Shown here in pieces: positions 7,103 to 58,710 of a stretch of 64,000 nucleotides of DNA. A program made the position numbers and the translations under genes. The DNA comes from Diplonema japonicum (lineage: Eukaryota; Protista; Euglenozoa: Diplonemea). The DNA lies in contig OZ025705.1 of the NCBI GenBank assembly GCA_964019335.1, positions 372,001-436,000 of the forward strand, given 5' to 3'. The notes below the pieces were generated by a model that ran no database searches, had not been told where the DNA came from, and saw only the letters and a list, made by a program, of their open reading frames with translations. Within the stretch, counting starts at the first letter, position 1. Each line of letters opens with the position of its first letter.

Positions 7103-7942
7103 TCAGTGGAGATCATCGAACAGGCTACTCCGCGTGATGGTCGTAGGCGGCCTTGCCATGGAGAGTGACTGGAACCCGGCGGAGCCGGTGCTAGTGAGGT
7201 CGTGGATGGCGAAGGCTTCATGGCAGTGCTCCCGGAGCAACGCGAAGACGTCCGTGTCCTGCTGTGGAACCTCACCACCGTCGCACTTCAAAGCATCACA
7301 GGCACGACTATTTGTTGTCTCCTCGCCTAGAATCCTGAGGACGTTGGGATCGATAGGAGCATCACTTTCGCTGTCTGTTTCTTCTCCTTGTTCTATTTCC
7401 TCTTCCTCTTCCTCCACATCGAGCGACATGTTCAGCGCATCCTTCATGAATATAAAGGGAGCTGGTTTTGAACCCGTTTTTTCTTCGTTGTGTTGAGGGC
7501 TGTTATTTCCTTGGTACTCGAAATTTTGAATGGTCCCCTCGAGAAGTGTTGCAGGGTGCTGGTCTCGAGAGTCTTCGATGTTGTATTGATCCCAGCTGTC
7601 GATTCTGTCTTTTGGATCTACTTCAAAAAGCCCTGGAAAGAATGCAGCTTCAAATAACTCATCACCATCGCACCCCTGCCCCATGAACTGTTCCTCAAGG
7701 CTGTTTACAAGTTCACGGGCGTCTGCGAGGCTGAGCGTCCTTAGGTATTCTACGGCTTCCGTTGTGTCGTGGGTTTCATCGCCACACTCCGGTTTCATTG
7801 TTTTCAAAATTATTTCTCGCATCTCGCATAGTCTCTTGCTGTACTGGGGCGTGCCTTTCTTTTTCTTCTTTGTTTTGTCTTTTTTTTTCCCTTTTTTTTT
7901 TTCTTTTTTCTCCTTTACATCGTGAGGGCCTGGCGGGTTCAT
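7103..7942 (-). CDS. Hypothetical acidic protein; probable in-frame A-rich intron at 7844-7918
   Basis: Long ORF of ordinary composition. The Lys-rich stretch is bounded by GTAAAG...CAG. Alternative start is ATG at 7822. Confidence 0.6.
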   Translation of the reverse strand: MNPPGPHDVKEKKEKKKGKKKDKTKKKKKGTPQYSKRLCEMREIILKTMKPECGDETHDTTEAVEYLRTLSLADARELVNSLEEQFMGQGCDGDELFEAAFFPGLFEVDPKDRIDSWDQYNIEDSRDQHPATLLEGTIQNFEYQGNNSPQHNEEKTGSKPAPFIFMKDALNMSLDVEEEEEEIEQGEETDSESDAPIDPNVLRILGEETTNSRACDALKCDGGEVPQQDTDVFALLREHCHEAFAIHDLTSTGSAGFQSLSMARPPTTITRSSLFDDLH

Positions 7943-8521
7943 ACTTTTACCCCTCCTTTTTGTGTTTTTTTTTTTTTTTTAAATGCAAACGGACGATAAA
8001 AAAATGGGAAAATTGAAGAAGAAAGGAACAAAATGAAGGGGGAGAAGAAAAAAAAAGAGAAAAAAAAATCACCCCTCCCAGTACAGAGGCGCTGGAAGGG
8101 AGGGAAGGTGTGGCACACTTCCCTCATTGAAAGGTTGAAACAAAAAAAAGGGGGGGGGGAGAAGAAAAGAAGAGAAGAAAAAAAGGAAACCGTAGAAAGG
8201 GGGGCAGAGACTTTTTTTTAATTCCTTTAGAACAGGGTCATAAAGGGATTTTTATAAAGGAAAAAGATCAGAGAACTGGACAGAACGAGAAAAAGAAAAC
8301 AGATGAAAACACTCCACACGTGAAAAGTCCAGCAAACGATACCCCCTTTTTTTGACCCACCTCCTTCTTTATTTTATTTTATATTTTTTTTTTGAATCTT
8401 ATCCCATATCCCCACTACGATAAAAACAATATCTAGGGGTTCCTTTTTTTTCCCCTCCCTCTTTTTTCATTCAAAAACGTTAGTACAAAAAAAAAAAAAA
8501 AAAAAAAGCCCTCCCATACTG

Positions 8522-9292
8522 CTAGTGGTGGTATTGGTGGAGGTACAAATTCCAGAGGTTATTGAAGATGAAGGCGAAACCTTTGTTGTTGGGATGGATG
8601 CAGTTGAGCTGCATGTCCTGGTTGGGAGAGAATTTTGCAAGGTCGGGGTGCCCAAGGGAGGCGTTTGGGTCACCTGCACCTGCCTGGATGGAGCCAAGGA
8701 GGTTCACGGCATCTACATAGGTGTGGGTCTTCTGAAGGTTTTCCCACACACCCTGAAGAGCGAGGAACTCAGTGTTGAAGCAAGTGATGTTGCCGTTGCA
8801 GTGGGGGTACAGCGCGTGGGGCACGAGGTCGCAGATCCCATTGCCAACCCCACAGCCAAGGATGTCGTAGCCAAAGCCGACAACGCGGACCTTGGGGTTT
8901 GTCTCGTTGATGGCCTGAAGAATCTTGTTCATGTTGGGGGTCACGTACTCAACCATCTTCTGTGTGCAGTGTGTGGTGCTGCCCCCCTCCAGAGCGCACC
9001 CAGGCAGCTTGTTCTTCGCGTCATTCCCCATCAGAGTCAACCACACCACCTGTGTGTCTGGCTTGGATACCGCCTTCTTCAACCTGTCCATGTACCTCTC
9101 CCCGATCCAGTCTTTGGTCGTAGCGCCGGACACCGCTATGTCCTCCACCGTGAGCTGGCTCCCTTTCTCCTTGAGCATGTCGAGGAACGCCTTGTGCCCC
9201 TCGGTGCCCCAGGAGTCCCCGATGATCACCACGTCCTCAGCCTTGCAGGTGGCCACTAGAAGTGCCGCGCATAGAACACGGGAGAGAGACAT
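8522..9292 (-). CDS. Secreted SGNH/GDSL hydrolase
   Basis: Signal peptide; IIGDSW (block I), AVSG, MGND and CIHPN (block V). Confidence 0.9.
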   Translation of the reverse strand: MSLSRVLCAALLVATCKAEDVVIIGDSWGTEGHKAFLDMLKEKGSQLTVEDIAVSGATTKDWIGERYMDRLKKAVSKPDTQVVWLTLMGNDAKNKLPGCALEGGSTTHCTQKMVEYVTPNMNKILQAINETNPKVRVVGFGYDILGCGVGNGICDLVPHALYPHCNGNITCFNTEFLALQGVWENLQKTHTYVDAVNLLGSIQAGAGDPNASLGHPDLAKFSPNQDMQLNCIHPNNKGFAFIFNNLWNLYLHQYHH

Positions 9293-9566
9293 TTCTTTTT
9301 TTTTTTTTTTTATATGTTATTTGGGGTTTTTTTTTCTTCTGTGGGTTTTTGAACGATGGACGATGACGTGGAATTTATACATGAAAAAAAAAAAAAAAAA
9401 AAAAAACAATAAAATAAATATTCATGAACAGTACAAGTGAGGGGAGGGGGGGGTGTGGGAAAGAATTTTTCCCTCTCTTTTCCCTCCCATTTTTTTTCCC
9501 CCCTCCCATTCTACAACTACAAAACGACGATCGCGGTTTATAATAAAAAAAAAATTTTTTTTTCCT

Positions 9567-56487: not shown

Positions 56488-56628
56488 TTTTTTTTTTTTT
56501 TTTTTTTTTTGTGTGATTTTAAAACTGTTGTTTGAAAAAAATGGTCAGCTCGTGTTTGAAACAAAAAAAAAAAAAAAAAAAAAAAAACGAAAATTTCTCA
56601 TCTCTCCCTACAATAATCTAGCTCTCAC

Positions 56629-57195
56629 CTAAACCCCTTTGACAGCTTTTGTTTGACTGTAATGGAGCATATCTTTCAAGAAGCTCTCGTCAGTATAGGA
56701 ACCGATGTCATCATTGAAAACGATTTCTGTGACGTAAAGTGGCCAGGCAGGGAAGCCATAAATGGACCTACTCAGGCCAAAAACGAATAACATCTCAGGG
56801 TCGGCGCCCTTAAATGGGGGAAGATTCTTGGTGATGAGTTCTTCAGAGATATCGGCACGGTCATGCGACTTTGTGAAATCATCGAAGGTTTTCTTACCGT
56901 CTTTTATGCTGAGCAATCTGGTGGCACCTTCTATGGATGGGAGGACGCCCTGTTCTGTATGGTAAAGGGTTACATCAGTGGCCCCAAAGCTCCGTATTTT
57001 TCGAATGAACTCTTTTATACATTCGTGGTTTTTCTCAGACCCATCCTGTAGGACAACAGCTACCCGATGAGGTGAACGTTCTATTTGTTCTTTTGTTATT
57101 TTCTTGGAAACTGCCTTGAAAACGACGGCTAGTATACAAGCTGCATATAATGCAGTCGTAAAGGCGGGTGAGGAGTACATCGTGGTGTATGACAT
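56629..57195 (-). CDS. NUS1: Nus1/NgBR-like cis-prenyltransferase subunit
   Basis: N-terminal TM; PHRVAVV; DPEMLFVFG..SIYGFPAWPLYVTEI; C-terminal YSQTKAVKGV. Confidence 0.75.
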   Translation of the reverse strand: MSYTTMYSSPAFTTALYAACILAVVFKAVSKKITKEQIERSPHRVAVVLQDGSEKNHECIKEFIRKIRSFGATDVTLYHTEQGVLPSIEGATRLLSIKDGKKTFDDFTKSHDRADISEELITKNLPPFKGADPEMLFVFGLSRSIYGFPAWPLYVTEIVFNDDIGSYTDESFLKDMLHYSQTKAVKGV

Positions 57196-57765
57196 TTTTT
57201 TTTTTTTTTTTTTTGAACCTCTGCCCTTTAGTAGTATTTCGGAGTAGAACAGCCCGCCTTTTGTAGAAAAAAAAAAAAAAGGTTCGAGAGAAAATGGAAA
57301 TACTTAGAGAAGCGGCCCTCCTTTAAAAAAAAAAAAAAAAAAAATCATTGGAGCTATCCTCTTTTTTTTTTTTTTTCTTCTTCATAACTAACTCACCCCC
57401 TCCTCTTCCTCCGTTCCTTTTTTTTTTCCCCCCCAGCTCTCTAATTTTTTTTTTTCCCACCCCGTTTTTTTAAAAAAAAAAAAAAAAACCCCTATTTTTT
57501 GTGGCAATAAATTCAAAAATTGTGTATTCACACAAATTGACCAATAAAAAAAATGGTTTTTTTTTTTTTTCTTTTTTTTTTCCGAAAAGGGATGAAAAAG
57601 AAAAAAGAAGGAGAAAAGAAAAAAAAAAAGGGAGGAAAGCAAGAAAAAAAAACTAAAGAACAGGAGGGGGGGGAGGGGACCGTGTAAACAAAACAAAATC
57701 TTTTTTTTTTTTTGGTACACCTACTAGCCTAAGTTCCTTTCTTCTCTCTTATTTATTTCTTCTTC

Positions 57766-58710
57766 TCACAGCTGCGACTCAAATCTAAAAGCGAGCCCGA
57801 CCCTTGCGCCCTCCTGCGCCACAGACGCCAGAGTAGAGTGTTCTAAAAGCTCAGCTTGGGTACTATTCACCTGGACCGCACCAACAGAAAGCTTGCTAGA
57901 AGCAAGGGGGAGAGAAACACCGATTTCATTAGAAGCAAAGGAAACATCGCCCGCCCAGCTTCGAGACGTATGGACGCCATAGAGGGAAACTCCAGTGCTG
58001 GTTAAACGTGGTGAAGATTCAACTTTAACTCGAATTTTTTTCCCGACTTTTCGACTAGCCTCCATGTCTGCCCCTAAGACTGACCGAGAGACACAGCTGA
58101 ACTCTGGGGTAATGATGCCGAATCCCATGTTCGCAATGGCCTTGCACCTCCCTTCGATAATGTCCTTTGAAAGGCTGTCTGTTGCCTTGCGTCCGCCCTG
58201 GACCTTTAGAACAACACCGTTAGTTAAATCGAATTTCGCCTTGAGCTGGTGTGCCCACCCCTTGTCGCTGGGTCCTTCCACGCTACCCTCCCTTTGTATC
58301 AGCCGCTCTGTTGTGGCCTGCAGATTTAGTTTCCCGAGCTGCGCTCGTAGGCCTTTTTTTTTTTTTTTTTTTTTTTTTTTTCCTTCCAACATACCCACCC
58401 CAGCCGAGCAGTATTCGTCATTCAAAGAACCCTTCACGAGGAGCGAAGGCATCCCTGCTATCTTTTTAGTATGTTTAACCTTCAAGGTAGGCATTGAAGT
58501 GACTTCTGAGGAAGCTGTTAGTTATGGTGTGTTTTAGACAGTGGCGGTGGCGGGGGATAGCATACGGAAGAAAGACTTGCTGCCTAGTTCGTTTGTCTTC
58601 ACCTCTATGCAGGTCCCGTCCTTCTCTTCTCTGCTTGCGGCAGAACTCGATAAACCAAAGGCACCCATCCTCAGCCCTGCCGCAACCAGGTTTGGTGGTA
58701 AGGCAGCCAT
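57766..58710 (-). CDS. Putative mitochondrial outer-membrane beta-barrel protein (283 aa); introns at 58515-58565 and 58353-58394
   Basis: Splicing joins two ORFs; alternating hydrophobic strands; C-terminal RVGLAFRF matches the beta-signal. Confidence 0.55.

Follow-up and report, generated by a model that had tools for sequence, protein, structure and literature searches.

The introns of the marine diplonemid Diplonema japonicum have been catalogued by Thakur et al. (RNA 2025, PMC12621601), who listed 10,131 introns, each with at least 15 split reads, of which 98.3 % are GT–AG, with a median length of 41 nucleotides (nt) and the donor (G)/GTATG. In the region designated as pyrimidine tract, adenine is the commonest base, YTRAY motifs occur in only 13.9 % of the introns, and U2AF1/2 are present in the organism (PMC12621601). 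C-rich tracts are found in other diplonemids (PMC12621601), the cis introns of kinetoplastids have retained pyrimidine tracts (PMC11613528), and in E. gracilis conventional introns and outrons have a common C-rich tract (PMC11170887). Except in nematodes, it is only incompletely understood how leader-adding cells prevent the spliced leader (SL) from being joined to internal acceptors, and D. japonicum is unusual in that it combines universal leader addition with some ten thousand tiny introns that have a poly(A) acceptor region. Here, we consider a stretch of 64,000 nt from this organism (the window; assembly GCA_964019335.1, contig OZ025705.1, forward-strand positions 372,001 to 436,000, with positions below counted from its first base). 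For this stretch, a preliminary description had proposed twelve small minus-strand GT–AG introns, most of them A- or purine-rich, and had suggested that pyrimidine tracts are reserved for SL trans-splicing while purine tracts shield internal acceptors.

According to the reading that we favor, with a probability of roughly 0.6, these segments are ordinary spliceosomal GT–AG cis introns of the ultra-short class of D. japonicum, the leader is added at classical acceptors, and the contrast between the two is not needed as a code. The class of very short A-rich introns is real but was already published in 2025: species, GT–AG ends, (G)/GTATG donor, tiny length, A before the acceptor, and the small number of YTRAY motifs are all the same, and on the cis side there is no difference from the published set (PMC12621601). 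Absent from that paper are the comparison of cis introns with leader acceptors and the question of cis/trans discrimination, and no paper making this comparison in diplonemids was found. The intron class is thus known, and its sorting by composition is a reasonable hypothesis that, if true, would make D. japonicum a clear-cut natural case of one spliceosome working with two modes of recognition.

All twelve GT...AG segments (32–75 nt) are present in the sequence as described; ten of them begin with GTAT (nine with GTATG), and the A content of ten lies between 0.54 and 0.74. Ten of the twelve proposed introns have independent support (Table 1); spliced gene models were compared exon by exon. 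Two segments are missing from an exactly matching transcript-derived protein (31287–31337 and 31483–31528) and two from a D. ambulator orthologue (58353–58394 and 58515–58565), while for six more the evidence is a Pfam profile together with the frame (three), the frame by itself (one), or the comparison of tandem paralogues (two). The exact matches come from the CH-GAS2 gene, whose exons were read against the EukProt D. japonicum protein EP01064_Diplonema_japonicum_P031775 (P0006, 595 amino acids (aa)). This protein holds the translations of 32340–31531, 31481–31338, and 31286–30459 (minus strand) as exact adjacent substrings, which confirms D. japonicum as the source of the window. Across 31483–31528 it reads exon 1, N (the split codon AAC), and exon 2, all exact, and both P0006 and the isoform P0001 are without exactly the 17 codons of 31287–31337, with flanking exons that match by 100 %. 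P0001, a short D. japonicum transcriptome isoform of the same gene (30459–32340, minus strand) with 360 aa, begins at the internal Met 236, a start that may be due to addition of the leader or to some alternative event within exon 1.

In the D. ambulator orthologue (P0004), the alignment shows a gap of exactly the 14 residues that 58353–58394 would encode, in agreement with the claim that poly(A), here 28 A followed by G, can run straight into the acceptor. The same protein aligns with both exons flanking 58515–58565 (up to residue 45 with one and from residue 47 onwards with the other), and the unspliced frame stops after 10 codons. The Ion_trans profile extends across both 17389–17420 and 17196–17247, with the 47-aa exon between them corresponding to profile positions 75–123 and the next exon to 130–238; without splicing, the frame stops after 11 codons at 17196–17247 and after 27 codons at 19041–19099, for which the frame is the sole support. 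The channel encoded by this gene (16092–21445, minus strand; ~1,719 aa, five exons) has four Ion_trans repeats, and a PDZ domain is inserted between repeats II and III. Across 26233–26278, the Thioredoxin profile (7–38, then 43–83) continues only if the distal A-run AG determines the frame, so the internal TTTTAG is indeed bypassed, as had been suggested; it may act as a branch site. Two further introns lie in tandem copies of a small gene. The open reading frame (ORF) common to both copies arises at 41159–41214 only in the spliced frame, and 41664–41708, which is in frame and would be ambiguous without its paralogue, differs from the former by indels (45 versus 56 nt), with GTATGT...TAG kept and exon 2 nearly identical. 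The two copies (41029–41300 and 41534–41788, minus strand), each with two exons, encode a protein of ~70 aa (MTFLKPH...SMVGH); a representative database search returned as sole match exon 2 of a distant protein, which is uninformative on the intron.

Table 1. Candidate introns and other features of the window (positions are those of the window).
Coordinates	Strand	Feature	Evidence or remark
7844..7918	-	75-nt candidate, GTAAAG...CCCCAG	in frame, stop-free; atypical donor
17196..17247	-	52-nt A/AT-rich intron, four-domain ion channel gene	joins open frames of 124 + 368 codons
17389..17420	-	32-nt T-rich intron, departs from A-richness	joins open frames of 608 + 58 codons
19041..19099	-	59-nt intron, 5′ part purine-rich, 3′ end pyrimidine-rich (CCCCAATTCATTCTTTACACAG)	joins open frames of 783 + 542 codons
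19316..19369	-	54-nt A-rich probable intron, GTATGT...TTTTACAG	in frame, stop-free; splice signature and pattern match only
26233..26278	-	46-nt poly(A) intron, thioredoxin-like gene	joins 174 + 62 codons
31287..31337	-	51-nt intron GTGTGG..A10 T11..A8G, CH-GAS2 gene	absent from P0001 and P0006
31483..31528	-	46-nt A-rich intron, phase 2, CH-GAS2 gene	P0006 exact match
41159..41214	-	56-nt intron with A22 tract, downstream copy of tandem small gene	paralogue comparison
41664..41708	-	45-nt A-rich intron, upstream copy of tandem small gene	paralogue comparison
58353..58394	-	42-nt intron, GTATGTTGGAAGG then 28 A then G	D. ambulator orthologue P0004
58515..58565	-	51-nt C-rich intron with CTAAC, exception to the A-rich rule	joins 78 + 248 codons
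32341..32362	-	A22 tract	directly before CH-GAS2 start codon 32340, confirmed by P0006
32397..32414	-	pyrimidine tract	upstream of CH-GAS2 gene
48515..48534	-	pyrimidine tract then AG	~85 nt upstream of tubulin ATG
62925..63249	-	repeated unit of ~330 nt	first base is the SL junction
63250..63269	-	pyrimidine tract and AG, TTCCCCCCTATTTTTTTTAG	putative SL acceptor

For the two segments outside this supported set, it is conceivable, although on balance doubtful, that they are not introns at all but Lys-rich coding or leader sequence, 19316–19369 being the less likely of the two. Both are multiples of three and stop-free, 7844–7918 starts with the atypical GTAAAG and is closely followed by two ATGs, and A-tracts before start codons are common (see below). 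However, the in-frame A-rich segments 31287–31337 and 58353–58394 were proved to be removed, and 19316–19369 shows the full GTATGT...ACAG signature. A database homology search with the ORF that holds 7844–7918 (7106–7942) yielded no homologue, and this segment could equally be Lys-rich coding sequence or an A-rich leader before the downstream ATG.

In composition, the validated introns stand clearly apart from their surroundings. Their interior consists of A 0.62, T 0.18, C 0.12, and G 0.08, as compared to A 0.27, T 0.32, C 0.22, and G 0.19 for the sense strand of 106.6 kb of noncoding DNA that served as baseline, and their last 20 nt contain A 0.62, pyrimidines 0.36, and G 0.023. The pyrimidine tract that usually precedes the acceptor of U2-type GT–AG introns is missing here, a departure that has likewise been published for D. 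japonicum. Runs of at least 8 nt in the validated introns comprise 12 A-runs and a single T-run, as opposed to 391 and 496 in the noncoding DNA (Fisher p = 0.0009). The exceptions to A-richness had been given as 17389–17420 (T-rich) and 58515–58565 (C-rich); both hold, and 19041–19099 has to be added owing to its pyrimidine-rich 3′ end, which brings the introns with T- or C-rich 3′ parts to three of the eleven counted as validated. The predicted minimum free energies of the introns range from 0 to -4.2 kcal/mol, and the two ends of an intron do not pair with each other. Nonconventional introns of the euglenid or hemistasiid kind were rejected, since the borders are GT–AG and no fold pairs one end with the other; being unstructured, the introns are therefore not of this type.

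It is quite improbable, in our estimation, that this A-richness has no splicing role and merely reflects slippage in unconstrained tiny introns or their origin, for example, from A-tailed retroposed insertions. Homopolymer runs are abundant in the noncoding DNA, as the above counts illustrate, the genome contains many SL-headed retrocopies, and the paralogous introns of the tandem genes show A-run indels. Neutral slippage, however, predicts about as much A as T on the sense strand, as is the case in intergenic DNA, and not the 12 to 1 of the introns; moreover, the intron ends showed neither a repeat family nor target-site duplications, and about half of the introns from an unbiased scan are CA-rich and not poly(A).

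That scan took no account of composition and searched 264 kb for GTATG introns that, once removed, bring a coding frame back into register, giving 15 introns on the sense strand and one on the antisense strand, with 0–2 for scrambled donor motifs. In addition, the pattern GTATG..A8..AG has 24 matches (10 distinct starts, of which seven are on the minus and three on the plus strand), with 0.18 expected. This excess, together with the sense-strand bias of the frame-restoring GTATG introns, excludes chance. Among the introns of the composition-blind scan, ~5 are of the poly(A) type, ~5 are CA/C-rich, and 2 are T-rich or mixed. The poly(A) type is thus the largest class but falls below ten in twelve, and since CA/C-rich introns are about as many as poly(A) ones, the original list partly reflects visual salience. 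A more permissive frame-joining intron finder was rejected, as it returned 46 introns in sense and 61 in antisense orientation.

On the leader side, the SL exon (39 nt, AACCAACGATTCTAAAGCTACAGTTTCTGTACTTTATTG) was located by its 3′ motif CAGTTTCTGTACTTTATTG. The SL RNA genes adjoin 5S ribosomal RNA genes in loci L008 (~1990–2500) and L012 (G000:C15 and C59), and their intron starts with GTACCC, which is why a search for the SL exon followed by GTAWG gave no match. These genes occur in pairs ~350 nt apart and have an Sm-like site (AATTTCTTG), a terminal hairpin, and a T-run. Genome-wide, the SL 3′ motif with GT directly behind it has 241 matches when up to 2 mismatches are allowed, and in the loci that were read most of them head retroelement families.

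Acceptors of leader addition become visible through a repeated unit that exists with and without the leader. The unit at 62925–63249 matches, with 92–94 % BLAST identity, the stretch that immediately follows the SL in L014 and L017, starting from query position 1 (L014) or 8 (L017), and the homology of the SL-headed copies (L014 and L017) with the SL-less ones begins at the very base after the 39-nt leader. The SL-less copies (from 63249 downwards in the window, in L029, and in L027) have otherwise unrelated flanks, all of which end in a pyrimidine tract and AG at the junction; therefore, the visible leader acceptors are classical. This fits the positional distribution over 58 gene starts (contig C58), where pyrimidine tracts of at least 12 nt peak 60–120 nt upstream of the start codons and the averaged pyrimidine content at -120 to -60 amounts to 0.61–0.64, so that the long pyrimidine tracts reported upstream of genes are borne out. 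In the window and the C58 stretch, genes are clustered on one strand in the euglenozoan manner: the minus strand carries nearly all long ORFs of the window, and a further 200 kb of contig C58 shows the same pattern.

Does composition then act as a code, in which pyrimidine tracts recruit leader addition and A/purine tracts hide cis acceptors, with cis splicing on a tract-independent route? We regard this as unlikely, although several observations point towards it. None of the bases of validated introns lies in pyrimidine runs of at least 12 nt, versus 13.3 % in noncoding DNA, three or four leader junctions fall on a pyrimidine tract and AG, the SL RNA 5′ splice site GTACCC is unlike the GTATG of cis introns, and a U2AF65-like gene has been kept though the cis introns are without its usual target (PMC12621601). 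The compositions of cis and trans acceptors thus point in the expected direction when, for the trans side, an averaged profile and three or four individual sites are set against introns that were picked by eye and of which three are pyrimidine-rich. In its strict form, however, the code conflicts with the T- or C-rich 3′ parts of these three introns and with the predicted intron L028:5159–5227, which carries a pyrimidine tract of ~21 nt. Furthermore, E. gracilis, other diplonemids, and kinetoplastids all trans-splice with pyrimidine-rich cis introns. The preliminary description was right in placing pyrimidine tracts at leader acceptors, as the three SL-less copies and the upstream peak show; the reservation and the shielding that it proposed are hypothetical functional claims, and the rule of composition is not a strict one. 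A-tracts are also found in 5′ untranslated regions (UTRs).

In fact, A-tracts are equally typical of mature 5′UTRs and of the 40 nt that follow a stop codon, which speaks against a code as well. In the last 20 nt before the 58 start codons, A reaches 0.51, and in the SL-headed DNA copies L010:428 and L019:2839 an A-run lies between leader and ATG, that is, in the mature 5′UTR. Since A-tracts precede confirmed starts (e. g., that of the CH-GAS2 gene) and occur in the SL-headed leader region, A-richness is no mark of an intron. About one third of the genes have an A-run of at least 8 nt within 40 nt upstream of the start (e. g., 32341–32362, 9293–9311, 50900–50933, and 56488–56510); such a run before the ATG may be a translation signal. 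The 5′UTR tracts also bear on a very improbable alternative, namely that the intronic poly(A) is a fail-safe that stalls ribosomes upon retention and marks unspliced mRNA for decay. Poly(A) stretches are known to stall ribosomes in other eukaryotes, and of the twelve segments, four keep the frame without a stop and would encode poly-lysine. However, the same A-tracts precede start codons, where stalling would be harmful, and the CA-rich introns would be left unexplained.

Returning to ordinary cis introns beside classical leader acceptors, we envisage the following mechanism. The cis introns, characterized by a strong G/GTATG 5′ splice site, an A-rich or CA-rich, G-poor 3′ part, and no pyrimidine tract, would be recognized by intron definition, for the most part through the strength of the 5′ splice site and the closeness of the acceptor. 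The A-tract could supply branch adenosines at any position, and with hardly any G, premature AGs would not arise in the last 20 nt; presumably, splicing then takes the first AG that lies at a permissive distance. The SL would be joined upstream of each gene at pyrimidine-tract–AG acceptors, as in kinetoplastids, and the choice between cis and trans would depend mainly on whether the same transcript has a 5′ splice site further upstream. Of the earlier proposal of intron-definition cis splicing independent of a pyrimidine tract, the independence is established for two introns by the exact transcript-derived protein and genome-wide by the published set (PMC12621601), while intron definition is the mechanism that we infer.

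Several points weigh against this reading. The strong A:T asymmetry of the introns relative to the neighboring noncoding DNA needs some selection, which the reading names only loosely, the evidence on leader acceptors stems from one repeat family with three or four sites in DNA copies, and the twelve candidate introns on the minus strand were picked by eye. A further model has two 3′ splice-site modes in one cell, a U2AF/pyrimidine mode for the leader and a tract-independent, A-tract-tolerant or even A-tract-dependent one for the thousands of tiny cis introns, whose loss of pyrimidines would have been selected as a guard of internal acceptors against the very abundant SL RNA; we consider this improbable, to about the same degree as the code discussed above.

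How the leader is kept away from internal acceptors is also the question behind outron definition in C. elegans. There, an upstream 5′ splice site is reportedly enough to direct cis splicing (Conrad, Blumenthal and colleagues), so that the answer lies in this site and not in tract composition, a further argument against a compositional code. Ciliates and other protists likewise have tiny A/T-rich introns of a few tens of nt that lack a pyrimidine tract and are spliced by intron definition; these organisms, however, are not known to use leader trans-splicing, and their introns are not marked by long, pure poly(A) runs into the AG. E. gracilis is also a euglenozoan with cis splicing, leader trans-splicing, and an unusual tract composition, but uses one C-rich tract for both acceptor types, which in D. 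japonicum appear to differ. With the SL acceptors of kinetoplastids (PMC9639853, PMC2916883), D. japonicum shares a 39-nt leader ending in CAGTTTCTGTACTTTATTG, same-strand clusters, and a pyrimidine tract at or near the AG; it differs by its thousands of cis introns beside leader addition and its A-rich 5′UTRs, and its acceptors were deduced here from DNA copies.

As to the splicing machinery, the U2AF65-like candidate (locus L044, G000:C19:431190–434139) shows collinear TIGR01642 matches (profile 157–508) below the family cut-off, and a gap of ~1.4 kb separates its first RRM region from the second. An Rfam search detected no small nuclear RNA among the loci examined. The ~330-nt unit, also present at L029:5099–5445 and L027:6245–6478, occurs several times in leaderless form on contig C58 and elsewhere with the leader fused to its first base; it contains a possible ORF of 77 aa, has a T-run behind it, and is a candidate gene family or retroposon. 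Finally, further GTATG...A-run...AG matches lie outside coding frames at 38074–38122 and 63286–63342 (minus strand) as well as at 354–405, 15634–15672, and 29778–29826 (plus strand). One of them is situated just upstream of a KH-domain gene and another between the ORF 63337–63948 and the putative leader acceptor, and these matches could be UTR introns or due to chance.

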